From Tubulanus polymorphus (taxonomy: Eukaryota; Animalia; Nemertea): DNA of 64,000 nt. A program made the translations under genes and the position numbers. Of the stretch, positions 23,201 through 61,700 are shown one piece after another. Within the stretch, counting starts at the first letter, position 1. Each line of letters opens with the position of its first letter. The stretch covers positions 1 through 64,000 of the forward strand of contig NW_027437449.1 of NCBI RefSeq assembly GCF_964204645.1, written 5' to 3'. The notes beneath the pieces were generated by a model, which worked only from the letters and a program-made list of their open reading frames with translations, made no database searches and had not been told where the DNA came from.

Positions 23201-23416
23201 TTAGAGAAGAAAGTCAGTCAAACCGTCCAGTTTAAGAATGTTCAATCAATGCTTCGTAAAAAGAATGAACAGTTGAAAGATCTTAGAAAACGATTAATGA
23301 AGTCAGTATTTACACCTCAATGTTGATGCAGGTCTCAGGGTGAAGTTTCACAGTCAAATAAAGTCATTTCGTTTTTTTTATTTATTTTCAGATATGAAAG
23401 TTTAGATGATGATTAA
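20240..23416 (+). CDS. LZTFL1: Leucine zipper transcription factor-like 1 (BBS17); exons 20240-20242, 20438-20565, 21218-21415, 21496-21628, 21919-22068, 22148-22216, 22797-22895, 23198-23301, 23392-23416
   Basis: M|TTELGVNEHHRNVVINYLRFAR; EDELINTSHTNVLMLRQLFIEAEKWHLKLSADISELENRELLEKIADFE; ELEKKVSQT..MLRKKNEQLKDLRKRL. GT-AG junctions are in frame; ATG-only first coding exon. Confidence 0.93.
20723..20994. mobile_element. Internally deleted copy of the 7737-8241 MITE in LZTFL1 intron 2
   Basis: Same TAATGTCTATTTCAA termini and left arm. Confidence 0.85.
22235..22455. repeat. 14-bp tandem repeat CTGTTTACTGAAGT
   Basis: Direct reading. Confidence 0.9.
22908..23180. repeat. 31-bp tandem repeat (~9 copies) filling an LZTFL1 intron
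   Basis: Unit AAACCAATCAAATTCATTGTTACACTTTTCT. Confidence 0.9.
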
Positions 23417-23469
23417 AAACCTGAACAATGAAACCTGAATATAACAGACAGATAGAGTTAGATCAGATT

Positions 23470-24786
23470 TACTGAACCCGGTCCGGACTGACTGAACCGG
23501 TCCGGACTGGCTGAGCTTGGTCCGGACTGACTGAACCCTGTCCGGACTGACTGAACCCTGTCCGGACTGGCTGAGCCTGGTCCGGACTGACCAAAATCGG
23601 TCGAGACTGACCAAACCCGGTCTGGACTGACTGAGCTTGGTCCGGACTGGCTGAACCCTGTCCGGACTGGCTGAACCCTGTCCGGACTGACTGAGCCTTG
23701 TCCCGACTGACTGAACCCTGTTCGGACTGACTGAGCCTGGTCCGGGCTGGCTGAGCGTGGTCCAGACTGACTGAACCCTGTCCGGACTGGCTGAGCTTGG
23801 TCCAGACTGACTGAACCCTGTCCGGACTGACTGAACCCTGTCCGGACTGGCTGAGCCTGGTCCGGACTGACCAAAATCGGTCGAGACTGACCAAACCCGG
23901 TCTGGACTGACTGAGCTTGGTCCGGACTGGCTGAACCCTGTCCGGACTGACTGAGCCTTGTCCGGACTGACTGAACCCGCTCCGGACTGGCTGAGCCTGG
24001 TCCGGACTGACCAAAATCGGTCGAGACTGACCAAACCCGGTCTGGACTGACTGAGCTTGGTCCGGACTGGCTGAACCCTGTCCGGACTGACTGAGCCTTG
24101 TCCGGACTGACTGAACCCGCTCCGGACTGGCTGAGCCTGGTCCGGACTGACCAAAATCGGTCGAGACTGACCAAACCCGGTCTGGACTGACTGAGCTTGG
24201 TCCGGACTGGCTGAACCCTGTCCGGACTGGCTGAGCCTGGTCCGGACTGACCAAAATCGGTCGAGACTGACCAAACCCGGTCTGGACTGACTGAGCTTGG
24301 TCCGGACTGGCTGAACCCTGTCCGGACTGACTGAGCCTTGTCCCGACTGACTGAACCCTGTTCGGACTGACTGAGCCTGGTCCGGGCTGGCTGAGCGTGG
24401 TCCAGACTGACTGAACCCTGTCCGGACTGGCTGAGCTTGGTCCAGACTGACTGAACCCTGTCCGGACTGACTGAACCCTGTCCGGACTGGCTGAGCCTGG
24501 TCCGGACTGACCAAAATCGGTCGAGACTGACCAAACCCGGTCTGGACTGACTGAGCTTGGTCCGGACTGGCTGAACCCTGTCCGGACTGACTGAGCTTGG
24601 TCCAGACTGACTGAACCCGGTCCGGACTGGCTGAGCTTGGTCCAGACTGACTGAACCCGGTCCGGACTGGCTGAGCCTGGTCCGGACTGACCAAAATCGG
24701 TCCAGACTGACTGAACCCTGTCCGGACTGACTGAGCTTGGTCCGGACTGGCTGAACCCGGTCCGGACTGACCAAACCCGGTCCGGA
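23470..24786. repeat. 20-bp satellite with higher-order structure just after the LZTFL1 stop
   Basis: Unit TCCGGACTG(A/G)CTGA(AC/GC)YYTG with recurring variant blocks (CCAAAATCGG TCGAGACTGA CCAAACCCGG); ~65 units. Confidence 0.95.
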
Positions 24787-25320
24787 TCCTCTCACAGTCC
24801 AGTTTAAATTCAATAGTTAGTGACAAGATTGATTTTTACCAATAAGTTTTTTTTTACTAATAATGTATTTAATTGTAATTATCTATATATGAATGAACTA
24901 ACCTAAAAATGATTCCAGAATGAATTGTCTGCCTCCGTAAATCACCCTATGACATCATCAAATTACTAATCTAGTTTCAGTCAAAACTCGAGTAGACAAA
25001 TTGATGATGTCATAAGGGGATAAATGAAAGGGTTGGCAACTCCGGTCTCGAACCTGGTTAGATTATACCATCATTCAAAAGTTAAGTCCTGCCATATGTC
25101 CGACATTTAGGCATACTGTGTTGTATTGTGTGTAGCCGTCCAGTTTTTCTATAAAAAATAAAAAATTTCAAAAAAGGAAATTGTTAGTTAATTGATTAGT
25201 TAGCAGTGGAATTTGTGGGATTCGAACCTTAATAGATCCGAAAATGAATAAATGACGACGCAAATACGATTGACTCATTTATCTGATCAATAATTATGAA
25301 TTTGACGAAAAAAAATGATG

Positions 25321-26985: not shown

Positions 26986-27774
26986 ATGGATATCGACGCG
27001 CGTGAAATAGAGACGTTATCTTGTCGACGTAAAACAATCTACGCCAGTCACGGATTAAGTATCGGATTCTCTGTGATTCTCATTATCGGTAACATTTTAC
27101 TGATTGTCGTGAAGACCTATCTGAATTTAGTTTACCTGGGTGTCGCGTGTGGCGCTGTAAGCATTCTATCTAGTTGTATTGATATATTAATCGCCTCGCG
27201 GAGACACGACGCTCAATGTCGCGTTTGTAGAATTCTCTATTACTGTTTAGAGATGTTCAGTATTTTAGGTTGCGCTGTTTTTACCGGATTCAGTTTCTCG
27301 TGGCACTATTTCGCTCGCGCGGACGGCACCGCGTCACGACTATCACTGGCGGATAAATCGTTTCGAGTCGGTGGTCGTCGCACGGAGAAACTAATCTTGC
27401 ACTATTTAATTCTCGGCTGTTGTTGTTTGCTGTTTGTGTTGATAATGATTAAACTGTGTTGTATCGGTTCAATGGCGAAGGTCGAACGGAAGAACGCGAT
27501 ACGCATGCGCAACGCTTACGAACGAAGTTCCGGCGCTGGATCACGTGTTTATGATGAGAGAGTGAGCGCTCAGAGTCGGTGGAGTTCACAACCTGCCGAT
27601 AGACTTATGCAGTATCATCAACCCCCCAGTACCGTGTCTTACCTACAGCCTACAGCGCCTCCTAGTGGAGGAGGGGAATATCCATCCTATAACCCGGTGT
27701 ATGATCCTCAGTTACAGCGACGTCAAACAGATGAACATCCGCCATCTTACGAGGAAGCGATGAGTGTCATATGA
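26986..27774 (+). CDS. Uncharacterised ~4-TM membrane protein with Cys-rich juxtamembrane segments and a C-terminal PPxY (PPSY) motif
   Basis: Single-exon 262-aa ORF; four hydrophobic segments (LSIGFSVILIIGNILLIVV, LVYLGVACGAVSILSSCIDILI, ILYYCLEMFSILGCAVFTGFSF, LILHYLILGCCCLLFVLIMIKLCC); tail PTAPP..HPPSYEEAM. Confidence 0.8.
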   Translation: MDIDAREIETLSCRRKTIYASHGLSIGFSVILIIGNILLIVVKTYLNLVYLGVACGAVSILSSCIDILIASRRHDAQCRVCRILYYCLEMFSILGCAVFTGFSFSWHYFARADGTASRLSLADKSFRVGGRRTEKLILHYLILGCCCLLFVLIMIKLCCIGSMAKVERKNAIRMRNAYERSSGAGSRVYDERVSAQSRWSSQPADRLMQYHQPPSTVSYLQPTAPPSGGGEYPSYNPVYDPQLQRRQTDEHPPSYEEAMSVI

Positions 27775-30837: not shown

Positions 30838-31073
30838 ATACATATCACTAATTGAGCAACTGATCTGTCGGCGAAAAATATTACAAATATACACAAAATT
30901 GGTATCGGTTTCAAAATAATTGCAGCAGCGACGAAAAATATCTATTTCAAAGAATTCTCAGCGAATTTTCTGATTGGACGAACTGTTATTTGTGATCGCT
31001 TGTTATTCGACGAAAAGATATGCGAACTATAGTGAATGATTCGGTTCATTCTGTCGTGTTGATGCTGTTCGGT

Positions 31074-34000
31074 ATGGATCGACTGAGAGCGCTGTTTATA
31101 GCGTCGCTGATCGTCTGGCGAGTTAACATCGCACACGCTGATCTGTCTGACTCTGTGACGGTCAGTTCGTCTTGTAGCAACACTTGGTACCCCGTCGATT
31201 CTACGTCCGGTTACATCGTTTCACCGAATTACTCGTCGTTAACGCACGGTGTTGAATGTCGTTGGTTCGTCAACAGCTCTTTACCGGGAACTTTCAACAT
31301 CAAACTATACTACGACATCGAGCCGTCGATATTCTGTAGTGATAACTACCTTATCGTCGGTGAGTCCGATAACAGATTCTGCGGCGAAGGAAAACATGAA
31401 ATCCGCCGTAACGATTCGATCTCGTTGATGTTTAGAAGTAACGTCGATGGTGCGCGGGGTAGTCGGGTTTATATCATATATCGTTTTGAACGAAACAATT
31501 TGAATTTGATTCACAACTGCAGATTCACAATGAACAGATTACAAACATCGACAGGATACAAATTTGCAATGTATTTATATCGTTGTAAATTATATTTGGA
31601 ATGGATCGGGATCCCAGATGGTTTTGGTTTTGGTATGAATTTGACGTTTACACAGATAGATTTCGGATTATTTCCTGGCGCTGATTCAGTGACAACTGTT
31701 CAAATTTACGACGGATGGAACACCAGTGAACCTATAGCTGTTATACCAGAACAAACCGGACATCCACCATCATCATTTTATACTAAAACCAACAAAGCCA
31801 TTATTTACTTAAATGATCGATCGTCTGTTAAATCACAACTATCAGTTCAGATGTATAGAATATCTGATTGGAACGTCTTTAATCCGTTAATTCAACTCTC
31901 TAATAACGAATCTGGAGTGCTCATTCCTGGTGTCAACAGTTTACACGTAATAACTCGATCAAAACACTTACACTGCTGGTCTATCAAAGTGCAGGTGTTA
32001 CAGTACGTCGTCTTCAACTGGACACGTGATCTCAGCACATCCGGTGACGTCATCGGTGTTTATAAACTAGAAGGGTTACGCGTTGTAGGAACTGGTATTT
32101 TACTCGGTTACAACTACCTGGAATCACTGAGTGTTAAATCTGACGGCTTTCTCGTCATACTGTGCGTTTTAATAAGACCAGATGTTTTACAATCGAATGT
32201 AAAAATTGATTATGAAGTGATATCTATTTCTATAAGAGACGTACAAGTTCACAAACCCTGGGTGAGTAAAAATAATTACTCAACTTCATCGGATAATGGA
32301 CATTTTGTGAACCTTTCGTGATTTTCAAAAACCTTTTTAAACATTAAATCTCTCATTCGAAAATGGTGAACACTTCGTTTTTACAAAAAAAAAATCATTT
32401 TTGAAAATAAGGAAAATAACATTCTGTTAATGGACAATTGTTCATATTTTGTAGATACTTGGCATTGATGGCGGTATTGGAAGTTTGACTCCTGGAAATC
32501 TGTTCCAGAAGACAACGATGGCAGCATTGATGTATCGTATAAACACATTAGAATTTAAACACAAAGTTGATATCTATAATCGTGGAATCAAACTAAAAGT
32601 CTTATCAGAGACGTGCGAGAGAGCTGGTTTTTATATATATGATGGTGGTAATTTTACAGCTAGACGCTATGGTCCGTATTGTCCTGGTGACGAATACGGT
32701 CGTGACGTCTTCGGTCTGGTTACATCAGGAGGACCGGTTACTGTAGTAGGATACGCTTATAACTGGGAGAATTGGGTCCCAGTGCGAAGAACGCCACTCG
32801 AATCATTGATAGAATATTCGGCAGCAGCTCTCAGATTCAATCCTACTGACTGTGACGGGTATGTTCTACAGGAAGGAGAAAATCAGATCAATATGACGTC
32901 AAACTGTCTGGTGATTACACCTGAAAACCGGCGCCTTCCTTTAGAAAACATTTATATATTATCAGAATATGAATATCAAATGGTGACATGTTTTTATGCA
33001 CAATTCGGGCAGTGTGGCAGCAAAATGAGTTTATCAAATCAGTTTCTCGGTGAGAGATCCGTATTAAACACATTGCAGCCCTTCAACAAATATGGATCCA
33101 GGGATAATGAATTCATAGTTACACTACGTCGTAAATGTCAAGTAGAAAAAAAACCTACACCATTTGCTCCTCATTTTTCTTCATTATACCCACAGAGGGA
33201 TGAATGTGGAATCTTATTACCAGCGAACAAGCTAACGGCTTTGTATGCTTCGGGATATTCTTATTACAGCTTTGAAAACCCGATAGAAAATAATCGAATT
33301 CAATATTACAGATTTATCATCAAATCTATCGATACTTTACCATGCAGTAAATTATCTAGGTTAGATAAAGATGAAGTTCTTTTCAAGGAACGAATACATG
33401 ACGTTAAGAGTATCGAGATCATTTCAGGAGGCTACAATATATTTCGTAGAGTTACTCGTGTTCCTAATAGCGAAACCGAACATCAAACTGAAATATGCGG
33501 AGCTAATGCTAAACGTGGAATTATATTTTATAGTTTAATGGACAACGAATTGTATTTTGAGATAAAAAGTGTTCACTTACATTACCGAATACAATACAAA
33601 TTAGTAGAAGAGTCGTTACAAATAAAAAAATTTGATAAAATCCATTGTAAATCAGGATTTCTAGATTCAGGAATTTCCTGCGTCAAATACATCAGAGATG
33701 AACGTCTGAATTGGGAGAACGCTGAAATGTACTGTCGACAGAAATACGGAGGACATCTTCTCAGTATCAACTCTGAACAGGAAATGATTTCTGTAAAAAG
33801 ATTATTCGCCACAAAACTGCTTAGAAAGGGATATACCCAGGAGGCGCTTATAATGATGATCGGGCTAAAATTCAAGGTAACTTCCAAAAGTAAGAAAAAA
33901 GGACAAATGGAGTAAAATTTAACGCGGATTTGAATCAAAATACTCCCAAAATTGATGCATTCCTAAACAGAATCAATGCAAACAATATTGAAAAGATAAT

Positions 34001-37000
34001 GGATGACAATGAACTGCATAATGATTCAGTTTTTCAGATTTTCAGTTTAATTCATAATTGAATTCATGTTATTGAATTAATGGTGATTTTTGTTAAAGAA
34101 TACAAAATGCTAAAATCGAATTTTATCTTTAAACAGAATAATGGTTATTACACGTGGACTGATGGGAAACCAATGAGCTACACGGAGTGGTTTAATCCAG
34201 CTATGGTAAACGACACGATACCAGAAGTTATTCAAGGATGGATATCTCCACTACGAAAACAGCCGATAAATGACGTCAATATGCCGTGTACGGCGATGAT
34301 TCTGAATAATCCACGAGGATCAGCGAACTGGGTTCGATTCCCGTGTCTCATCGAGGAGACTCGAACAACTTTCATTTGTGAATCGGATAGAATTGACGTC
34401 GATTCAGAACGCGTGGATAATTCGACAATTAGAAATCAAAATAAAACGACCATCCTAGAAATAACTGATACTAATAACGATATTGTATTTCTCACTGGAA
34501 ATAAAAGTGTTCTAAATTCCGATACAACCAATAACTCGACTTGTAAAAAAGGTTGGCAAAATGTGGGTGGAAAATGTTGTCAAATGCTCACAGATTGGAA
34601 CAACAATCGAGGTTTGGATATTCGAAGTGCTACGAAAATGTGTCGTGACCTTCACGCTGAAATAGGCATTGTAGCTAATCATGTGGAAAATGAAATAAAA
34701 GCATTAATTGACGAGTTTAGTTTTAAACACCAATATGGCGCTATACTGACTGTGGATTCTAGGAAAATGTTTCAAGTGATCGAACCAGTTTTGACAAGGG
34801 ACGAAATCACTTTTATCGAGTCGTTGAAATGGTCGATAAAACCGTGGAATAAACAGAAAAACAACGTTCATTCTGTGCTATGTTCCTATAATGAAACTGG
34901 TGAAGAGTTGGCTTCTATAAGCGGTTGTGAATCGTGGCAGTTTAAATGTAATGATCAAAGATGTATCAGCGACCATCGCGTATGTGATACCAGAAACGAC
35001 TGTCAACACGGTGAAGATGAACTCAATTGTTCGGGTTCAAACTTACAGAGTCAGTTCCACTGTTCAGATGGACGGGTTATATCAGTGAGTAATTTATGTG
35101 ATTTCATAAAGGATTGTGTCGATGGCTCGGATGAGAACTCGTGTTTTCATCCCCCGTGTTTGCCCCAACAATTCCGCTGTACCAGTGGTCAATGTGTCGA
35201 TAGATCGTACCGATGTGATGGAATCCTTAACTGTAAGGACGGCTCCGACGAGAGGACATGCGATCCAGAACTTTGCAACGGGTTTCTGTGTAAGAATGAT
35301 GAATGTATCAGTTCTCTATTGTATCGGGATGGTGTTGTAGATTGTAGCGGAAGCCTCGAAGAAGATGAACTTTTAACATCGAATGTTACAGTGAATACTA
35401 CAGTTCACTGTAATGATGAGAACTACTGTACGACTAACTTCACAAACTTATGTAAGAAATCTGATGAACAAAGATGTTCTTTCGATTCTCCTCATTGTTA
35501 TTCTAGACGTCATAGATGTATTTTAGAAAGGATGCCGATTGGTTACCCGGTATGTAGAAGGCTCGAACATATACAAGATTGTACCGATTTTAAATGTCCA
35601 GCTGGTACTGTAAAATGTCCAGCATCTTACTGTATACCGATAGGACAGGTGTGCGATGGTCGATCCGATTGTCCTAATTCAGAAGACGAGCGAAACTGCG
35701 AGACTTTGTCGTGTCCCGGCATGTTCAAATGTGGCCAGGAAAATCGATGTATTCCACAATCTGAAGTTTGTGATGGTGTTGTGGATTGTAAACATACTAC
35801 TGACGACGAGTCTTACTGTAACATCACGTGTCCTGAGTATTGTAAATGTCAAGGCTATTTAATTGATTGCGATGATGCTGGTTTAGTAGAAATAACTGAT
35901 CTTTTCTCGGCATCAACTCGAGTTCTTATTTTATCAGAAAACCGAGTAGTATTCAATGAGTCCACGTTTTCTTCTTACCTCTATCTACATTTCCTCAATA
36001 TTTCACGTAACAATTTGTCTTATATTGTTCCAAACTCGTTCTCAAACCTACATAATCTACATACATTAGATCTAGCTTATAACCGCATGACATCATTGAT
36101 CGCGAATACATTCGCCGGTTTGTTTAGTTTGAAAATGCTCTTGATTTTTGGAAATCCAATTAGATATTTAGAAGAAGGCAGTTTTCAAGGTTTAAAGTCT
36201 ATAATCGATCTCGATCTTCACGGACTTTTCTTGTTGTTGCTTGGTGGAAATGTGTTCAGTGGTTTATCCGTATTAGAGTCGTTGAATGTCAGCAATAACA
36301 GAATCAGTTATATTTCACCAAACGCATTTTCCGGGTTAACAAAACTGAGAAATCTGGATCTTACCAAAAATTCAAAAGTCATATCCGTAGTTAGAACCGT
36401 TTTTGAGAGTCTAACATTACTGAGTTCTTTGGCTTCTGACGCGTACAAATTTTGTTGCATGGTTCCGAGTGTTGACCAGTGTCTCCCGGAAGCCGACCAA
36501 TTTTCATCCTGTTCCGACCTGATGGGTAACACTGTTCTTAGAGCAATCATTTGGGTGATCGCTTCATTCAGCTTTTTTGCGAACAGCATTGTCATTTTAC
36601 TTCGCATTCAAGCGTTTCGAATTTCAACCTCTGAATCACGTAACACATCCTCTGATATCCTCATCATTAATATTGCAACCTGCGATTTTCTGATGTCGAT
36701 TTATCTGTTTCTGATCGCAGGAGCCGATTACGTCTATAAAGGGGTTTATTTCTTAAATTCTGAAAGTTGGACAGGTAGTTCTCTGTGTCGATTCGCAGGG
36801 ATTATAGTGACTCTTTCGTGCGAGGGATCTTTGACTTTTCTCCTCATTCTTACGCGTCAAAGATACTCGAATATCGTCAATCCATTTTCAGGAAGCCCAA
36901 TTTTATCTTCGAATTCTGTATCCGGTATTTGCTGTTTAAGTTGGATCATTTTGGGCACCATTTCGATGCTACCACTATCGTCATCTTCTTATTTCGGAAA

Positions 37001-37436
37001 TAACTTTTACGGCACAACCGGTGTTTGTTTACCTATGAACTTACTAACCATCAATGTCCACGCCTGGCAATATTCATTCGCTATATTTGCCGTGTTTAAC
37101 TCGGTCGTTCTTGCTACAATAATGATGACGTATGCACAGATGTATAGACTCGTATCTGGAAGCAGGTCCGGTTCGGGTAGAGCTGATCCTACCGAATTGG
37201 TTCTGGCGCGTAGGAGTTTAGTGATAAATCTGTGTAATTTATTTTGCTGGTTACCGATAATTATCGTTCAGTTTTGCGCTGTATTGCGAGTAGAAATACC
37301 GAACCAAGTGGCGGCTTGGTTGGCGGTACTTTTCCTACCGATCAACTCGTCACTGAATCCACTTCTTTACACCATCCTCACTATTGATGTTAAATCAATT
37401 CGGGCAAGAAATAAACGGGTTTGGAAAACTCGCTGA
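31074..37436 (+). CDS. GRL101-like leucine-rich-repeat GPCR with an extended CUB + C-type lectin + LDLa ectodomain; exons 31074-32261, 32455-33876, 34137-37436 (~1969 aa)
   Basis: Signal peptide; CUB motifs (GYIVSPNY..ECRW, CSDNYL..RFCG, IYDG..YGPYC); CTLD (LNWENAEMYC..GHLLSINS..IGL|..YTWTDG..YTEW); ~7 LDLa repeats; LRRNT and LRRs; hinge YKFCC..FSSCSDLM; 7TM ending PINSSLNPLLY. Both introns are phase 0, GT-AG. Confidence 0.9.
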
Positions 37437-48032: not shown

Positions 48033-51000
48033 CTATATATCTATTCCTACTCTCAGTCTTTTATTGAGTTTTTTAAGTTCTGATATGATGTAATCTCTCG
48101 TCGTATCGCGGTCGGTGCTGCAGCAGTAGATACACAGGTCAGAAAGATGCGGAAGATTATTGATTAATTCGACGATTGATTTGACGAATAAATCGATATC
48201 GTGCTGTGTATTAATCCGCGCGAGTGAACTGTGAAACTTTAAATAACGAATTGACGAGACGTGTTTTAGTTGTTTAAAGATGCGATTGTTCTGTTCCGGT
48301 CTATCGAGACAGCTATCAATACTGACTTTTATCAGCTGATTTACCGCATCTGTTGATAGATACCGAACAAGTGCGTCAACATCAGCTTCTGAATGCAACT
48401 GTATTTCTAATACAGTCAGCCGCGGCGGGTGATCTAGAACGCGGTGTATTGGTAAATTAAATCCGTAAATGAAAAGACGTTTTAGTTTCGGCATTGAACC
48501 GACACTATCACTGATTGCTGCACATTCATCTGTCGTTAGTTTGCTCAGTCCGCTCAGTCCGAGCAGTCCGAGCTGAATTGTTTCGATGTGTGAAGATTTT
48601 ATCGTGTTGTTTAAATCATTCAATTCCTCCGAACCGATCAAATCTTTATCGAATATTACTCCAAAAAGACATAAGGTTTTCAAACTCGGAATGATGTTTA
48701 TCAGCCCTCTGATTGTATTTCTATCGAGCTGATATTCCCACAGCGATCTGAGATATAGATGTTTTATGGATGGATACGATTTGTGAATATTGACTAAAAT
48801 ATTACCTAAACGTTCCGCACTAACAACAGTATTAATAATCAGACTCTCCACTGTATTGTGTGTGTTAGTATCAACACTGATCAACCGCGCGTCATCTTTA
48901 GTGTTAATCTCGTGACTTGTAATAATCCATTCATTATTGAGTTTCTTGTAACATTCACCATCTCGCCGCACAAACCAGTTTAAACTGTTGCTCTTCTGAC
49001 ACATAGTCAAGCACTGATCGGGTTTTGATGACCTGTATGTATCTAATATCATACCGTGAAGACTAGTGTTACTCGCTATGGCTGTTTCTAATACGCGGTA
49101 ATCGTCGGGTTCCAGTTCGTGAATACCCAGTATGTAAACTAGCTCGATCTGACATTGTTTGTGTTCGAGTATTTTTGCGAGCATGTTTATCTGCGATCTG
49201 CTATAAAATGCAGATACGAACAACATTTTCTGCATGTAGTGAACTATTTCACTAATGGCGTCGTCCGGCCAGTCGGCTTCATTCATGCAGATTGACAACT
49301 GATGAGATAAAACAGTTCTTTCGGATCGGAGTTCGATGTAGCGTTCGTAATCGGGGATGAGCGCCAAATCTGCCGATTCCCTAGTAACCGTAACAAAGGA
49401 CTCGACTCTATCCACTATTGTGACTGCTTTTAAATGTTCATCTATTAAAGTCTTGAAAAGTTCACCGAGGCCGCGGTTAAACTTGTAACGATACAGCAGC
49501 CCTGCCATGAATCTCGGGTATAATTCACCATATTTCACAAGTTCGTCCTGTAGTTGTTCAAACGCGCATTTATTCCAGGGTGTTTTCCAGGGTATTTCAT
49601 TACTGTTGTTGAATTGTACGACCGAGTGTACCGCCGCCAGAAATTCGTGCACAGATTTGTGTATGAACCGCAGCTGGACGGAGCGGTCTGATTTCCGTCG
49701 CGGCGACATCTCTTTGCACGTCAAAGCCGTCCTTTTCGATTCGTCGAGTTTGAGACGACTTTCGGTGAAGCTGTTTTGATGCTCGATGAGCGTCTCATAC
49801 GCGACTTGACAAATTTCTTTAAGCGCTTTAGAATTTTCGATATTGCGGAAAAAACATTCCTTCGACAACTCGAGGCCCTCGCGTTTACTGATCAGAAAAC
49901 ATGTCAAATCGATGTAGATATCGGTGAGTTTTGATGGTATCGTAATTTCTTCCTCGTCCATATACAGAAAACAAAACATATGTAGTATCAGCGGGTTGTA
50001 GTAGATACTTTTAAATAAAGGTGACGCTGCGGCTTCAATCTTGTCGAATAGCTGATATGGATCGCGCTCGGGGAATTTTCTCTTCATAATATCGATGACT
50101 TCTTCCTGTTCGAAGCCGGATATCGATACAACGGTGAATTTGGGATCAGTGACGATCATGCTGCCCCCGGACTCACGTGTTGTTATGACGATATGCGCTT
50201 TCGGTAATTTATTGGTCACGTGTACGATGTCTTTTTTCGCTTTATCGTTTTTCAACTCGTCGAAGCCGTCTAGAAAAAATATCGATTTTTCTGCATTTTC
50301 CTCTACGAATTCTTTAAAACTATCAATCGGCAGAACCTTTCTGATTTCTGGATTCAAAAGATTTTCGTAAATGTACTTATAAATACACGCGTTATCAGCG
50401 GGCAGTTCATTTAACGGTATATAGAATAACATAGGAAATGTTTTTAGAAACGGTGATCGCTCCCATGACAACACTTGATTAACTACCTGAGTAGTTTTAC
50501 CCATACCGGGTTCACCTACGAGGCACACGGGTTTCACATCACTCTCTTTATAAGTGAAAAGTTTCCCGAAATCATCGGGTAAAATCAATGACTGCTCCTC
50601 ACTTCCTTCATTTTTCTTCGGGTTTCGTTTTTGGGCTTGAATTTTCGCGTGTTCTTGGGTGAAGAAGTCATTGAAATTGGTGACTTCTTCGTTCCACCAA
50701 ACCTCTTTGAAATTTTCAACATCGATCATTCGTTGATACGTTTTTTTCAAACTCATCTGAACTTGATCAACATCTGTAAAAATAAAATCAGTTTGAGATT
50801 TTTTAGAATTTCTATGGCGGCTGATTTTGCCTCAAAATCATAGAATCATAGAAAATGTCATGAGCTAAAATTTTACAATATTGACTGCAGTTAAAAAATA
50901 TACCAAGGAACTACAGAGTTATTCTGCTATTCAACGCCCCCTGGTGCCCTTAAACAAAAACCAACGAACCTGAAACTCACCACAATCATATATCATGCCA

Positions 51001-54000: not shown

Positions 54001-57000
54001 AATTGTATTCAATTCAATATTTAATTCTCCTGGTGGGTTGAACAAAAGACCGAAATTCCATGTCCTATGACAATGCTGATAACGACCAAATATCAAGACT
54101 AAGTTAAAATCACTAACCCACTATGTGAAAAACATCGTGGTCGGCGTTGCTACGCGACCCGACCACAAAAATGAAATCAGTTTGAGATATTTTAAGCCGG
54201 GTGTAAGTCGGTTGCGACGCGATAAGTCTTTTTACAGTTGCCAGGCGCCATTTTTTCCTACCCACCGGGTCCGCATTGTTGAATTCTTGTCCCAATTTTT
54301 TCCCCAGTTTAATTTTCTTATTTCGTTCATATCTCTGGATTGGATTAAGATGGAAATAAGGTAAAAATATCGATGAACTCAGCTGATAATTAACTTTTCT
54401 ATGATATCACTCATTCATAAATTTAAAGCAACAATGCGCGCTGGTGAAGTTATAAACATTCATATCCTCTTTCCGATAATTCAACTTGAATTATTGCTCA
54501 TCCCATAATGATATAATATTATTACATTCTATACTGTAATGAACAGAAAATGGTTCCTCCGAAATAATGTAATATTTTAAATTAATCTCAATAAGTGAAG
54601 AGTTTGTGTGATGGATTTGTATTTAGTAGGATGTCTAAGGATAATGAATCATTCAAAAGTTCGTAATTCTTACAAAATTTAATCTACATTTTCAGAGTTT
54701 TTAGGATCAATAAACATCTATATGTGATCTTATGTGCTTTTTACGGTTTTCCATTATATTTATTAGTTTTTAAGTAATTGCGAGTCAAACTTCCAAAACA
54801 CGTTTTCTAGAGTCCCCTGCGTGCATCTTTAGCCTATATCAGGAAATTTCACAATTTTACCGGTCCCTGCTTTGTTGAAATCAACAACAATAAATAAACA
54901 AAAACTCTATGGCGGCTGATTTTGCCTCAAAATCATAGAATCATAGAAAATGTCATGAGCTAAAATTTTACAATATTGACTGCAGTTACAAAATATACCA
55001 AGGAACTACAGAGTTATTCTGGTATTCAACGCCCCCTGGTGACCTTAAACAAAAACCAACGAACCTGAAACTCGCCACAATCATACATCATGTCATGAGC
55101 TAAAACTTTGTAATTGATTGTGGTGGCAAAATATGCACCAGAAAGAATCTTTCTGTGGGGTCGGGTTAGCAACAAGTTCGATCAGAGACATTCAAGGTCC
55201 CATCTACACGAGTGGAACAATCCTTTATTTTCAATCTACACGAGGAAAACATTTCCAAAAAGTCACCTTTAAAAAAGTCGGCTTTTCACCTTTTTATACA
55301 AATTTATACTTAATCTAAAGATAAACGGCTTCGTTGATTTTGGTGAGCTTCACGTGTTACTAAAACGAGGGCGATATCATCACAGCTCCGCAGTAAATAC
55401 TGCAAACTACGCCGCGCATCAACATGCAATTTTCAGCACAGGACAAAATGTTTATTAATCTTTCTCATCTTCTGTGAATTTCAGTTTGAGTAAATCGGAT
55501 GACAACAAATAATTTCATTTAGTTCTTAACTTTTGAAGTGAGGATTGGAAAACTGTATTAGTCACGTGATACACGATGAACTGGTTTTCTGAACACAAAT
55601 CTTAGCTGCTTACGCGCATAAGAAGTGCTGGTTTTATGTCCTTGCGCAGGGAAACCAAATATACTTTGTTAATTTAGATTTCATCAAGAAAATGTTTCTA
55701 GGCCTCGGATATACAACATAATAAGTAGCGGCACACTTCAACGAGTATGAATTACTTTTTTAGAAAGGCCGATCAGCCATATCGGTGCGCAAAAGTAAAG
55801 GGATATCCCGATATGACATCAGGCGGGAAAATAATTATTATTTTACAGAATTCCTTCGATTTCTTCTTTCAGAAATAAATTCATTCGTTCTTTCAATAAA
55901 CCCAGGAGAGTGCAACAAATTTCCCTGAACTAATTACAAAGCTACGTATCTTGTGTCAAAAAACAGAGAAAATGGGAAAATGAAGTCGAACCACTAAAAC
56001 ATCGTGGTCGGCGTTGCTACGCGACCCGACCACAAAAATGAAATCAGTTTGAGATATCTTAAGCCGGGTGTAAGTCGATTGTGACGCGATAAGTCTTTTT
56101 ACAGTTGCCAGGCGCCATTTTTACGGTACTCACCTCCCTAATTTTACAGTCGAGATAAGATGAACCTTTGTCTAGAATTATGAATTTGTTGTCACTTAAT
56201 TCCTGATCACAAGTGTGACAAATTGCGAGCTCTGAACTCTCACCCGGCGGTCTTTAGGGACTCAAGTGTTTTTCTGCTATTAATACACAGGGTCCAGTTC
56301 CACAGTTTGGAGTTAAAATTTAACCCTGAGTTAACTCATTGAAAATGAACTAATTTTAACTCAGAGTTAACTCTAACTCACAACTGTAGAACTGGGTCCT
56401 GTTCTTTTTTATCATAATTCAAAATACCGTAGACCCTGACTGTTTTAGTCAAATGTTGGTGGGTCCATTTTAGTCCTCAGAATCTTTAAAGACAATGTAT
56501 TACTTTCGCCTCAAAACTTTATACCGGTTTTATATGCGAGATCACATTTAGACTCAAGTCACATCATTCTGTACTGAACTGAACTCCGATGGTTAAAATC
56601 TATAATTACCGAGATTCTCAGCAGGTCTGGTGCTGGCTTGTGTAACTGCGTGGATATTTTGATTCACTGTATTATTGTCACCGATTATACTTAAATTAGA
56701 ATTGTCTGCATTTATTCCTGGATTACTCGCCGCCATAGTAACGTTTACTGAAAAACAGAATTTAGAATTCAGTCATTTTATCTCAACAAGTGCAGCACAG
56801 TTTTCCTGAAAAAAAATATGCTGGTTGGCCAAATTGTAAATTAGTACATATCACATGCAGAAGACCAGATAACAATGATAAAAGCTTACTATAATACAAG
56901 TGTAGCAACCCAAGAGATCTCAATAATAACAATAATAAAATGTATGAATTTGTGAGCAGTTTTCGCCTGTAAATAATAAGACATAAACTACATGTAACAC

Positions 57001-57392
57001 ATTCTAGCCACAAATATTACCAGCCTCGCTAGCCATATACTTAGCACAAGCCATTAACCCTTTAGCTCATTAACCTCACTAGTTGGCGCAAAATCTTCAC
57101 TGCCCGAAAAGTGAAAGCAACAATCAACTGGGACTTAAATCCCAACTGGGCTTGACAATCTTACGCCACCTGGCGGATAGAATATATTGAAATAAGATTT
57201 AAGAACAATCGGGTGGGTGCGTTCATTTCTGGATTCATAATTACCGAGATTCTCAGCAGGTCTGTTTAAGGCTTGTGTATCTTCATGGTAGCGATATTCA
57301 TGTGTGGTTTTAATACACTTTTTTTTATTTGTTGAACTGATTTGATCAATTTCAGAATTTTCTGCATCTATTTCTGGATTACACTCCGTCAT
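48033..57392 (-). CDS. NLR (NACHT + degenerate LRR) with a short RHIM-like N-terminus; model exons 57392-57245, 56747-56610, 56171-56134, 54334-54262, 50773-48033 (1045 aa)
   Basis: Walker A GEPGMGKTT, Walker B IFFLDGFDEL, sensor VITTR, NPLIL, winged-helix FIHKSVHEFLAA and LRR-like C-terminus are all in the large exon (high confidence). Upstream exon phases (1,1,0,1) splice in frame through GT-AG sites (moderate confidence). Confidence 0.8.
51821..52123 (+). mobile_element. Solo Penelope-like pseudo-LTR fragment
   Basis: Absent from the paralogous block at ~55690; T-rich, with TATAAAT at ~51945 followed by a hammerhead core. Confidence 0.7.
51978..52022 (+). ncRNA. Minimal type I hammerhead ribozyme
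   Basis: Stem I CGC/GCG; CTGATGA 51983-51989; stem II GGCTAA-tagtct-TTAGCC; GAAA; palindromic stem III AACGTT; predicted cleavage after GUU (52016). Confidence 0.8.
56290..56399. mobile_element. Short palindromic MITE (similar short elements at ~14840-14972, ~53368-53530, ~5343-5463)
   Basis: GGGTCCAGTTCCACAGTT..GAGTTA / TAACTC..AACTGTAGAACTGGGTCC inverted ends. Confidence 0.65.
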
Positions 57393-57456
57393 GGTACCGG
57401 GTACTGAAAAATAAAAGTTTAAAATTCAGTCATTCTATCGCGGTAAGTGCAGCGCA

Positions 57457-58042
57457 TTAGCTGTCGGACAGCACACTGGCTAGCTGTCGGACAGCACACT
57501 GGCTAGCTGTCGGACAGAACACTGGCTAGCTGTGAGACAGCACACTGGCTAGCTGTCGGACAGCACACTGGCTAGCTGTCGGACAGCATACTGGCTAGCT
57601 GTCGGACAGCACACTGGCTAGCTGTCGGACAGCACACTGGCTAGCTGTCGGACAGCACACTGGCTAGCTGTCGGACAGCACACTGGCTAGCTGTCGAACA
57701 GCACACTGGCTAGCTGTCGGACAGCACACTGGCTAGCTGTCGGACAATTCACCAGCTATCAGCCAGTTCCCTAGCTGTCAGCCAGTTCCCAAGCTGTCAG
57801 CCAGTTCCCTAGCTATCAGACAGTTCACCAGCTATCACACAGTTCACTAGCTATCACACAGTTCACTAGCTGTCAGACAGTTCACTAGCTGTCAGACAGC
57901 ACTATGGCTAGCTGTCGGACAGTTCACTAGCTGTCAGACAGTTCACTAGCTATCAGACAGTTCCCTAGCTATCACACAGTTCACTAGCTGTCACACAGTT
58001 CACTACCTGTCACACAGTTCACTACCTGTCACACAGTTCACA
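57457..58042. repeat. 23-bp minisatellite grading into a related 20-bp minisatellite
   Basis: TAGCTGTCGGACAGCACACTGGC, then TAGCTRTCAGACAGTTCAC variants. Confidence 0.9.
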
Positions 58043-58415: not shown

Positions 58416-58468
58416 CGAGATTCTCAGCAGGTCTATCGACGGTTTGCTCCTCGTCATAGTAACGTTTA
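58416..58468 (-). other. Internally deleted (53-nt) third copy of the NLR N-terminal exon with intact splice sites
   Basis: TTTTTCAG|TAAACGTTACTATG...AGACCTGCTGAGAATCTCG|GTAATT; flanks match those of the 56610-56747 exon. Confidence 0.75.
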
Positions 58469-58684: not shown

Positions 58685-61263
58685 CAAACTGTCGTTAGTT
58701 GTGTTCTAGTTGTGTCTGTCACGCGATTTCTAGTGGTAAATAGCGAATATCAAACTGTCGTTAGTTGTGTTCTAGTTGTGTCTACCACGCGATTTCTAGT
58801 GGTAAATAGCGGATATCAAACTGTCGTTAGTTGTGTTCTAGTTGTGTCTACCACGCGATTTCTAGTGGTAAATAGCGGATATCAAACTGTCGTTAGTTGT
58901 GTTCTAGTTGTGTCTGCCACGCGATTTCTAGTGGTAAATAGCGGATATCAAACTGTCGTTAGTTGTGTTCTAGTTGTGTCTACCACGCGATTTCTAGTGG
59001 TAAATAGCGGATATCAAACTGTCGTTAGTTGTGTTCTAGTTGTGTCTGACACGCGATTTCTAGTGGTAAATAGCGGATATCAAACTGTCGTTAGTTGTGT
59101 TCTAGTTGTGTCTACCACGCGATTTCTAGTGGTAAATAGCGGATATCAAACTGTCGTTAGTTGTGTTCTAGTTGTGTCTACCACGCGATTTCTAGTGGTA
59201 AATAGCGGATATCAAACTGTCGTTAGTTGTGTTCTAGTTGTGTCTGACACGCGATTTCTAGTGGTAAATAGCGGATATCAAACTGTCGTTAGTTGTGTTC
59301 TAGTTGTGTCTGACACGCGATTTCTAGTGGTAAATAGCGGATATCAAACAGTCGTTAGTTGTGTTCTAGTTGTGTCTACCACGCGATTTCTAGTGGTAAA
59401 TAGCGGATATCAAACTGTCGTTAGTTGTGTTCTAGTTGTGTCTGCCACGCGATTTCTAGTGGTAAATAGCGGATATCAAACTGTCGTTAGTTGTGTTCTA
59501 GTTGTGTCTGCCACGCGATTTCTAGTGGTAAATAGCGGATATCAAACTGTCGTTAGTTGTGTTCTAGTTGTGTCTACCACGCGATTTCTAGTGGTAAATA
59601 GCGGATATCAAACTGTCGTTAGTTGTGTTCTAGTTGTGTCTGCAACGCGATTTCTAGTGGTAAATAGCGGATATCAAACTGTCGTTAGTTGTGTTCTAGT
59701 TGTGTCTGACACGCGATTTCTAGTGGTAAATAGCGGATATCAAACTGTCGTTAGTTGTGTTCTAGTTGTGTCTACCACGCGATTTCTAGTGGTAAATAGC
59801 GGATATCAAACTGTCGTTAGTTGTGTTCTAGTTGTGTCTACCACGCGATTTCTAGTGGTAAATAGCGGATATCAAACTGTCGTTAGTTGTGTTCTAGTTG
59901 TGTCTACCACGCGATTTCTAGTGGTAAATAGCGGATATCAAACTGTCGTTAATTGTGTTCTAGTTGTGTCTGACACGCGATTTCTAGTGGTAAATAGCGG
60001 ATATCAAACTGTCGTTAGTTGTGTTCTAGTTGTGTCTACCACGCGATTTCTAGTGGTAAATAGCGGATATCAAACTGTCGTTAGTTGTGTTCTAGTTGTG
60101 TCTGCCACGCGATTTCTAGTGGTAAATAGCGGATATCAAACTGTCGTTAGTTGTGTTCTAGTTGTGTCTGCCACGCGATTTCTAGTGGTAAATAGCGGAT
60201 ATCAAACTGTCGTTAGTTGTGTTCTAGTTGTGTCTGCCACGCGATTTCTAGTGGTAAATAGCGGATATCAAACTGTCGTTAGTTGTGTTCTAGTTGTGTC
60301 TGCCACGCGATTTCTAGTGGTAAATAGCGGATATCAAACTGTCGTTAGTTGTGTTCTAGTTGTGTCTGCCACGCGATTTCTAGTGGTAAATAGCGGATAT
60401 CAAACTGTCGTTAGTTGTGTTCTAGTTGTGTCTACCACGCGATTTCTAGTGGTAAATAGCGGATATCAAACTGTCGTTAGTTGTGTTCTAGTTGTGTCTG
60501 CCACGCGATTTCTAGTGGTAAATAGCGGATATCAAACTGTCGTTAGTTGTGTTCTAGTTGTGTCTACCACGCGATTTCTAGTGGTAAATAGCGGATATCA
60601 AACTGTCGTTAATTGTGTTCTAGTTGTGTCTGACACGCGATTTCTAGTGGTAAATAGCGGATATCAAACTGTCGTTAGTTGTGTTCTAGTTGTGTCTGCC
60701 ACGCGATTTCTAGTGGTAAATAGCGGATATCAAACTGTCGTTAGTTGTGTTCTAGTTGTGTCTACCACGCGATTTCTAGTGGTAAATAGCGGATATCAAA
60801 CAGTCGTTAGTTGTGTTCTAGTTGTGTCTACCACGCGATTTCTAGTGGTAAATAGCGGATATCAAACTGTCGTTAGTTGTGTTCTAGTTGTGTCTGACAC
60901 GCGATTTCTAGTGGTAAATAGCGGATATCAAACTGTCGTTAGTTGTGTTCTAGTTGTGTCTACCACGCGATTTCTAGTGGTAAATAGCGGATATCAAACT
61001 GTCGTTAGTTGTGTTCTAGTTTTTTCTACCACGCGATTTCTAGTAGTAAATAGCGGATATCAAACTGTCGTTAGTTGTGTTCTAGTTGTGTCTGACACGC
61101 GATTTCTAGTGGTAAATAGCGGATATCAAACTGTCGTTAGTTGTGTTCTAGTTGTGTCTACCACGCGATTTCTAGTGGTAAATAGCGGATATCAAACTGT
61201 CGTTAGTTGTGTTCTAGTTGTGTCTACCACGCGATTTCTAGTGGTAAATAGCGGATATCAAAC
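58685..61263. repeat. 66-bp satellite, ~39 near-identical copies
   Basis: Unit CAAACTGTCGTTAGTTGTGTTCTAGTTGTGTCT(AC/GC/GA)CACGCGATTTCTAGTGGTAAATAGCGGATAT; explains the 879-aa repetitive ORF. Confidence 0.97.
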
Positions 61264-61410: not shown

Positions 61411-61700
61411 CTCTTGGTTTGTGACAAAACTGTATGAAAAATGTCCGTAGAAACTACTGCGCATTGGGTAAAACACTGAACTGCGATCAAATTGAGATTT
61501 CACCGACCAATATTTCACCGCACTCCCGTCACGTGATATATCGTATTTTTAGATATGAGGTAATAATCGTCACGTGTCCTGTGAACCCCGTACATTACCT
61601 GACATTACGTCGTTCGATTAGAATAAGACACTGATTATTTTTAGACCCCGTAGAAAACCGCTGTCGTTTCGGGCCACACGATTGGTCGTAACATTAAGAA
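61411..61700 (-). promoter_or_regulatory. Candidate first (5' UTR) exon and promoter of the NLR gene
   Basis: Donor AG|GTACGT at 61411/61410; TCAGT Inr-like sequence near 61478; upstream CCAAT boxes and CACGTG E-boxes. Confidence 0.35.

Follow-up and report, generated by a model that had tools for sequence, protein, structure and literature searches.

For NLRs, signalling through amyloids has been proven in fungi and bacteria but is only predicted in animals. In Drosophila, PGRP-LC and PGRP-LE use a non-canonical cRHIM to engage an adaptor with a RHIM and a death domain, which acts upstream of FADD and Dredd. The RHIM-NACHT layout is already known in animals from amphioxus, in which Branchiostoma BF82280 is a RHIM-NACHT-repeat protein whose RHIM replaces the death fold (Kajava et al. 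2014, PMC4262963). The core tetrad of RHIMs is defined as (V/I)Q(V/I/L/C)G (PMC9444067). Nucleation by RIPK1 and RIPK3 needs an aliphatic tetrad with the spacing 0, 2, 8, 10, and loop deletions in RIPK3 can reportedly raise nucleation (preprint 10.64898/2026.02.19.706818). In nemerteans, RHIMs were not detected in Lineus and Notospermus (PMC9835746).

Here we analyse LOC141914559, a RefSeq NACHT-LRR gene of the palaeonemertean Tubulanus polymorphus, which lies in a 64,000-nt stretch of contig NW_027437449.1 (the window). According to the original prediction, this gene may encode an NLR that signals through an RHIM-like amyloid motif, carried by a 138-nt exon, in place of a death-fold domain. 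Like BF82280, the predicted protein has an N-terminal RHIM-type motif where a death fold would stand, then a NACHT domain, then repeats; both come from invertebrates, and the evidence is computational in both. LOC141914559 differs from BF82280 in its spiralian host, in the arrangement of the Tubulanus motif as tandem phase-1 cassettes (canonical, variant and null), and in the non-canonical core of its own copy.

Exon structure of LOC141914559

The RefSeq protein of LOC141914559 (1008 aa, with the 138-nt exon included) matches the exons of the window letter for letter. In the RefSeq model, the predicted protein consists of the 159-nt cassette, the 138-nt cassette and the NACHT-LRR exon (Table 1). 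The 138-nt phase-1/phase-1 exon and its peptide, from which the original prediction started, are real: the sequence, the splice sites (a pyrimidine-rich AG acceptor and a GTAATT donor for 56747-56610 on the minus strand) and the RefSeq model agree. Two paralogous cassettes upstream of this exon (57403-57245 and 58468-58416) were absent from the earlier gene model. The ATG of the 58468-58416 copy is out of frame with the downstream cassettes, and this copy, when included in a transcript, would create a short upstream ORF. The 66-nt unit of the large minisatellite has one plus-strand frame without a stop, and a second, short-unit minisatellite array between the cassettes (57480-58040) is common to the paralogs.

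Table 1. Features of LOC141914559 in the window and loci elsewhere in the genome with Pfam RHIM matches; positions without a prefix are those of the window.
Feature	Position	Strand	Remarks
One large NACHT-HD2-LRR exon, phase-1 acceptor	48033..50773	(-)	Pfam NACHT about 50531-50070
138-nt phase-1/phase-1 cassette exon, RHIM-derived, shifted-register SIIG core	56610..56747	(-)	In RefSeq model P0006 at residue 51
SIIG core codons	about 56691-56680	(-)	Within the 138-nt exon; internal ATG 56736
159-nt paralogous cassette, decayed core QISS	57245..57403	(-)	RefSeq start codon at 57392
53-nt internally deleted copy of RHIM-less cassette	58416..58468	(-)	
66-nt minisatellite, most of presumed first intron	58685..61263	(.)	Also upstream of a C8 paralog's cassettes
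Possible non-coding first exon	61411..61479	(-)	Initiator-like TCAGT, AG/GTACGT donor; read from sequence
RHIM match, 17.9 bits (sub-threshold), and Death match, 48.8 bits	G000 C7:3976836-3977797	(-)	Pfam, coordinates only
RHIM match, 26.2 bits	G000 C3:26755824-26755889	(-)	Best Pfam RHIM match; best non-paralog match of the family profile
RHIM match, 22.2 bits	G000 C8:4552388-4552432	(-)	Outside the NLR family

The NACHT-LRR frame is unbroken across 907 codons. A NACHT domain (PF05729) is found in the large exon with E=1.1e-15 and 58 bits, against a cut-off of 26.7, while a Pfam search of the same exon did not detect LRRs. The evidence for the LRR fold comes from P0007, a close paralog that is 88% identical over the NACHT region. 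The C-terminal half of P0007 is predicted to form an alpha/beta LRR solenoid, which matches NLRC4, NLRP3 and ribonuclease inhibitor with E about 1e-7 to 1e-5. Taking this model of the close paralog together with the NACHT match, we class the product of LOC141914559 as an NLR.

A path from the 138-nt exon to the NACHT exon through two micro-exons had been proposed. These exons do join in frame as stated, but both the RefSeq model and all the paralog isoforms that were seen connect the cassette directly with the NACHT exon, a join that is also in frame. For micro-exon 1 (56134..56171, minus strand, 38 nt), no copy was found in the paralog DNA fetched, and its donor falls at a duplication breakpoint. 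In the paralogs, copies of micro-exon 2 (54262..54334, minus strand, 73 nt) either vary in length between 73, 74 and 75 nt or no longer have the AG; in this gene, micro-exon 2 belongs to a repeated intronic block, whose second copy (52637-52565) is without an AG. Both micro-exons lie in duplicated intron DNA and are unsupported as exons.

The absence of a death-fold exon from the gene, also part of the original prediction, was borne out, since no Death, CARD or DED match was found on the contig of the window (C32) or near any family member. As a positive control, the same searches recover a conventional CARD-NACHT gene on C5 (C5:23598918-23600451, minus strand), and the Tubulanus genome therefore has a death-fold NLR too. 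The other upstream open frames of at least 70 codons that were tested gave no Pfam match, death folds included. The compact paralogs have about 280-500 nt between the cassette and the NACHT acceptor, a spacing that leaves no room for a death fold. The RefSeq N-terminus of LOC141914559 is made up of two cassettes, and the protein does not class as a death-fold NLR.

The window holds several other features. On the minus strand, an exon at 1556-2353 has EH1-like and WPAWVY-type motifs, which are typical of engrailed, and no Pfam match. The large exons of a GRL101-like receptor lie at 31020-37436 on the plus strand, with six LDLa repeats, LRRs, a rhodopsin-type 7TM region and a weak C-type lectin match upstream. 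A 262-codon ORF at 26986-27774 (plus strand) has about four hydrophobic segments, a PPxY-like tail and no significant Pfam match, and a minisatellite array with long open frames occupies 23402-24826.

RHIM ancestry and variation of the cassettes

Three sister exons with a VQIG core exceed the Pfam RHIM cut-off of 20, at 22.3, 22.3 and 21.9 bits, and a canonical sister exon scored separately against Pfam RHIM (PF12721) reached 22.6 bits (E=7.5e-5). The 138-nt exon is 80% identical to the canonical sisters at the DNA level, with E about 1e-48 to 1e-50, and the SIIG and VQIG codons align without gaps through the core, where V is changed to S and Q to I. The Pfam scores of the sisters, the DNA identity of 80% and the gapless core show that the 138-nt exon is RHIM by descent. 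The claim of an RHIM-like motif therefore stands as regards its origin, but this copy has neither the Pfam match nor the standard core. Scoring its peptide with the Pfam RHIM HMM, one of the checks originally suggested, gave no match at E<=10, and SIIG fails the (V/I)Q(V/I/L/C)G tetrad, in line with the caveat of a divergent core that accompanied the claim. At positions 0/2/8/10 the 138-nt exon has I, A, S and I, compared with I, V, V and I in the canonical sister. Two of the four key aliphatic positions are thus lost (A and S), which counts against amyloid function. An ESM Atlas search with the peptide of the 138-nt exon returned no look-alike.

LOC141914559 belongs to a family of about 18 intact paralogous NACHT-LRR exons in the genome, besides many broken copies, with 72-88% identity among paralogs in the NACHT region. 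More than 30 copies of the cassette exon occur genome-wide, mostly upstream of NACHT exons and often in tandem, and tandem phase-1 cassettes derived from one RHIM exon form the N-terminus in most intact genes with a readable 5′ region. The cassettes fall into canonical (VQIG, VQMG), shifted-register (SIIG, SISG, SVRG, SVSG, RIGG), decayed (QISS) and RHIM-less (96-nt) classes. LOC141914559 holds non-canonical cassettes only, with SIIG and QISS cores; its closest paralogs have, after SIIG, a VQMG cassette that is absent here. In LOC141909593, a C8 paralog with an identical SIIG exon, the predicted RefSeq isoforms X1-X4 include SIIG, VQMG, both or neither.

Evidence on whether the variant cassettes are maintained points in more than one direction. 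In nearly all cassette copies, indels downstream of the ATG preserve the frame, which counts for function, and the shifted class retains the alternating hydrophobic pair, one residue earlier. A distant copy on C12 preserves the SIIG core, with 92% identity over 48 nt compared with 63-81% in the flanks. Purifying selection in the core is not visible: nonsynonymous exceed synonymous changes about 3-8 fold in most pairs, with small counts, and the exons are often more diverged than the upstream intron.

Other arrangements were seen within the family and around it. In one C9 gene, a single exon before NACHT (L012:486-1193; G000 C9:3605399-3606117) is built of eleven tandem RHIM-derived units of 21 residues, the majority of them with QIG as their core, and RefSeq starts this gene at a later ATG. 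An AlphaFold2 model of this 11-repeat C9 sister is a beta-solenoid (pLDDT 79.5) that matched generic beta-helices and curli CsgA, and not a RHIM structure. AlphaFold2 gives such beta-solenoids for arbitrary, meaningless repeats too (PMC11795689), and the model consequently carries little weight. Three identical cassette copies with a spacing of 2079 nt lie at G000 C1:19744860-19749155, with no NACHT match nearby, and cassette clusters at about 2.386, 3.590 and 3.807 Mb of G000 C8 include two-motif exons; after them come fragments of the first part of the NACHT exon. For P0025 and P0026 (LOC141906641 and LOC141906642; C6), RefSeq joins the same type of NACHT-LRR exon to sequence for a signal peptide, Ig domains and what looks like a transmembrane helix; provided that these models are correct, the products would be membrane-anchored Ig-NLRs. 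P0005 (LOC141914492; probably C19) combines a family NACHT-LRR with an apparently helical N-terminus of ~300 residues that has no significant Pfam match.

A profile built solely from the Tubulanus shifted-register exons was run on ~210 foreign NLR relatives. Its three best matches, in Glandiceps talaboti, probably Ptychodera flava and one further assembly, all fall in short N-termini without a death fold, with 0.06 expected in shuffles; the matches are individually weak (E 0.03-0.6), and the extent of the profile was chosen after seeing them. With these modest statistics, sequence comparison suggests a link between the SIIG register and the N-termini of death-fold-less hemichordate NLRs. A canonical-core profile run on the first set of foreign NLRs found nothing beyond chance, lancelet motifs in a second set did not outscore false positives, and an ESM Atlas search with a lancelet N-terminus gave no usable match. 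In three subfamilies of the Branchiostoma NLRs P0261-P0290, Gly/Asn/Thr-rich motifs are conserved ~110 residues ahead of the P-loop; their cores include INIG, YNIG and TTGD, and Pfam does not call them as RHIM. We also considered a broader reading, in which SIIG would represent an unrecognised, Pfam-invisible class of amyloid motif (hydrophobic-x-hydrophobic-x-G-D-x-N-T) at the N-termini of death-fold-less NLRs across Bilateria (nemertean, hemichordates, perhaps lancelets), with Tubulanus switching amyloid specificity by splicing of canonical, variant and null cassettes. This reading is speculative, and we think it doubtful.

Candidate partners, proposed mechanism and alternatives

Outside the cassette family, Pfam RHIM matches occur at three loci, on C7, C3 and C8 (Table 1). 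On C7, the RHIM match lies ~720 nt upstream of the Death match on the same strand. A RHIM followed by a death domain is the order found in RIPK1 and Imd, and by the coordinates of its matches the C7 locus is a candidate RHIM-death-domain adaptor of the Imd/RIPK1-like type. At C3:26.756 Mb, C8:4.552 Mb and C10:10.633 Mb, searches found no adjoining TIR, kinase, CARD or DED match; of 482 candidates, 136 were scored in the kinase search. The genome also has, on C4, a FADD-like gene with DED and Death and, on C1, a gene with tandem DEDs. A search with the MLKL_N profile gave no match and was uninformative.

In the mechanism that we propose, ligand sensing by the LRRs would lead to oligomerisation of NACHT, which would cluster the disordered N-termini so that the cassettes stack as a beta-arch amyloid seed. 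The seed would template its own fold in an adaptor, for which a RHIM-death-domain (Imd/RIPK1-like) protein is plausible, and the adaptor could in turn feed a FADD plus tandem-DED caspase axis or an NF-kB response. SIIG would be a variant motif in which the two hydrophobic residues that face inward lie one position off (L-S-I-x-G-D-N-N-T), and the shifted pair may confer weaker or different partner specificity than that of VQIG cassettes. Through exon skipping, the motif would be tuned or lost. For family members with canonical cassettes, we consider amyloid signalling probable. LOC141914559 has only non-canonical cassettes, so amyloid templating by its SIIG copy is something that we infer, and we put it forward tentatively, as a possibility of somewhat lesser standing.

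The missing aliphatic residues at two of the four key positions would fit with a SIIG cassette that is an inert, decayed spacer, in a sensor-only NLR that signals by NACHT co-oligomerisation with a VQIG paralog; NAIP and NLRC4 form such a co-oligomerising pair of sensor and signaller. The lack of a visible purifying-selection signal in the core, the existence of RHIM-less cassettes and RHIM-less isoforms, and the degree of identity among paralogs in the NACHT region (72-88%) would all agree with this. We nonetheless regard an inert spacer as rather unlikely, given the better conservation of the SIIG core than of its flanks in the distant C12 copy and the recurrence of a similar register in hemichordate NLR N-termini. 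The cassette might alternatively serve as a decoy or damper that caps VQIG fibrils, with splicing setting the ratio of activating to damping forms. Canonical, variant and null cassettes do stand in one array and are variously combined in RefSeq isoforms, the exons often diverge more than the upstream intron, and inhibitory RHIM-like proteins provide a precedent (PMC4262963), as do Pirk/Rudra in the fly Imd pathway and viral RHIMs. LOC141914559, however, itself lacks an activating cassette on which damping could act, and damping by this copy appears unlikely.

Other features of the locus bear on the state of the whole 5′ end. Of the cassettes, one has an internal deletion and is out of frame, another is decayed and the VQMG cassette is absent; the intron contains triplicated blocks, the contig is small and unplaced, and many family copies are broken. 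These observations could mean that LOC141914559 is a recent duplicate with a rearranged and decaying 5′ end and functionless N-terminal cassettes, a reading that the intact 907-codon NACHT-LRR frame and the inclusion of the 138-nt exon in the 1008-aa RefSeq protein make still less likely than damping. Splicing of the NACHT exon to an effector exon elsewhere, death-fold or other, with the cassette incidental, seems to us very improbable. RefSeq does give the same type of NACHT-LRR exon other N-termini (P0025, P0026 and P0005), but Death, CARD and DED matches are absent from the contig, the RefSeq model of LOC141914559 starts in the cassette array, and there is a plausible first exon near 61.4 kb. 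Amyloid templating by the SIIG cassette remains the reading that we prefer for this gene.

Comparison with known amyloid-signalling systems

New in this analysis are the rejection of the micro-exons, the finding that LOC141914559 contains no canonical cassette, and a link, with modest support, of the SIIG register to the N-termini of NLRs in deuterostome invertebrates. The Tubulanus family extends RHIMs to nemerteans, in which the earlier survey of two other species found none. A young, expanded NLR family with canonical, variant and null RHIM cassettes, together with a candidate adaptor, makes the question of NLR amyloid signalling testable in an animal. If the shifted-register motif works, some invertebrate NLRs that are listed without an effector domain would have one.

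With the fungal NWD2/HET-S and PP systems and bacterial BASS3/Bell, the Tubulanus gene shares a short N-terminal amyloid-type motif before the NOD as the sole effector module (10.1101/2020.01.06.895854). Those fungal and bacterial NLRs adjoin their effector gene, mostly have WD40, TPR or ANK sensors and activate HeLo or Bell domains, whereas LOC141914559 has no adjacent effector. The sister exons resemble RIPK1, RIPK3, ZBP1 and TRIF, which are not NLRs, in their VQIG core, G-D-N-N turn and 0/2/8/10 aliphatic spacing; the 138-nt exon differs from these proteins at the first two core positions, which are S and I. Compared with Drosophila PGRP-LC and PGRP-LE, the Tubulanus receptor is an NLR and its link to the C7 adaptor is putative. 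Like the fly receptors, it has a non-canonical RHIM-like motif, and candidates for the adaptor, FADD and Dredd are present in the Tubulanus genome.
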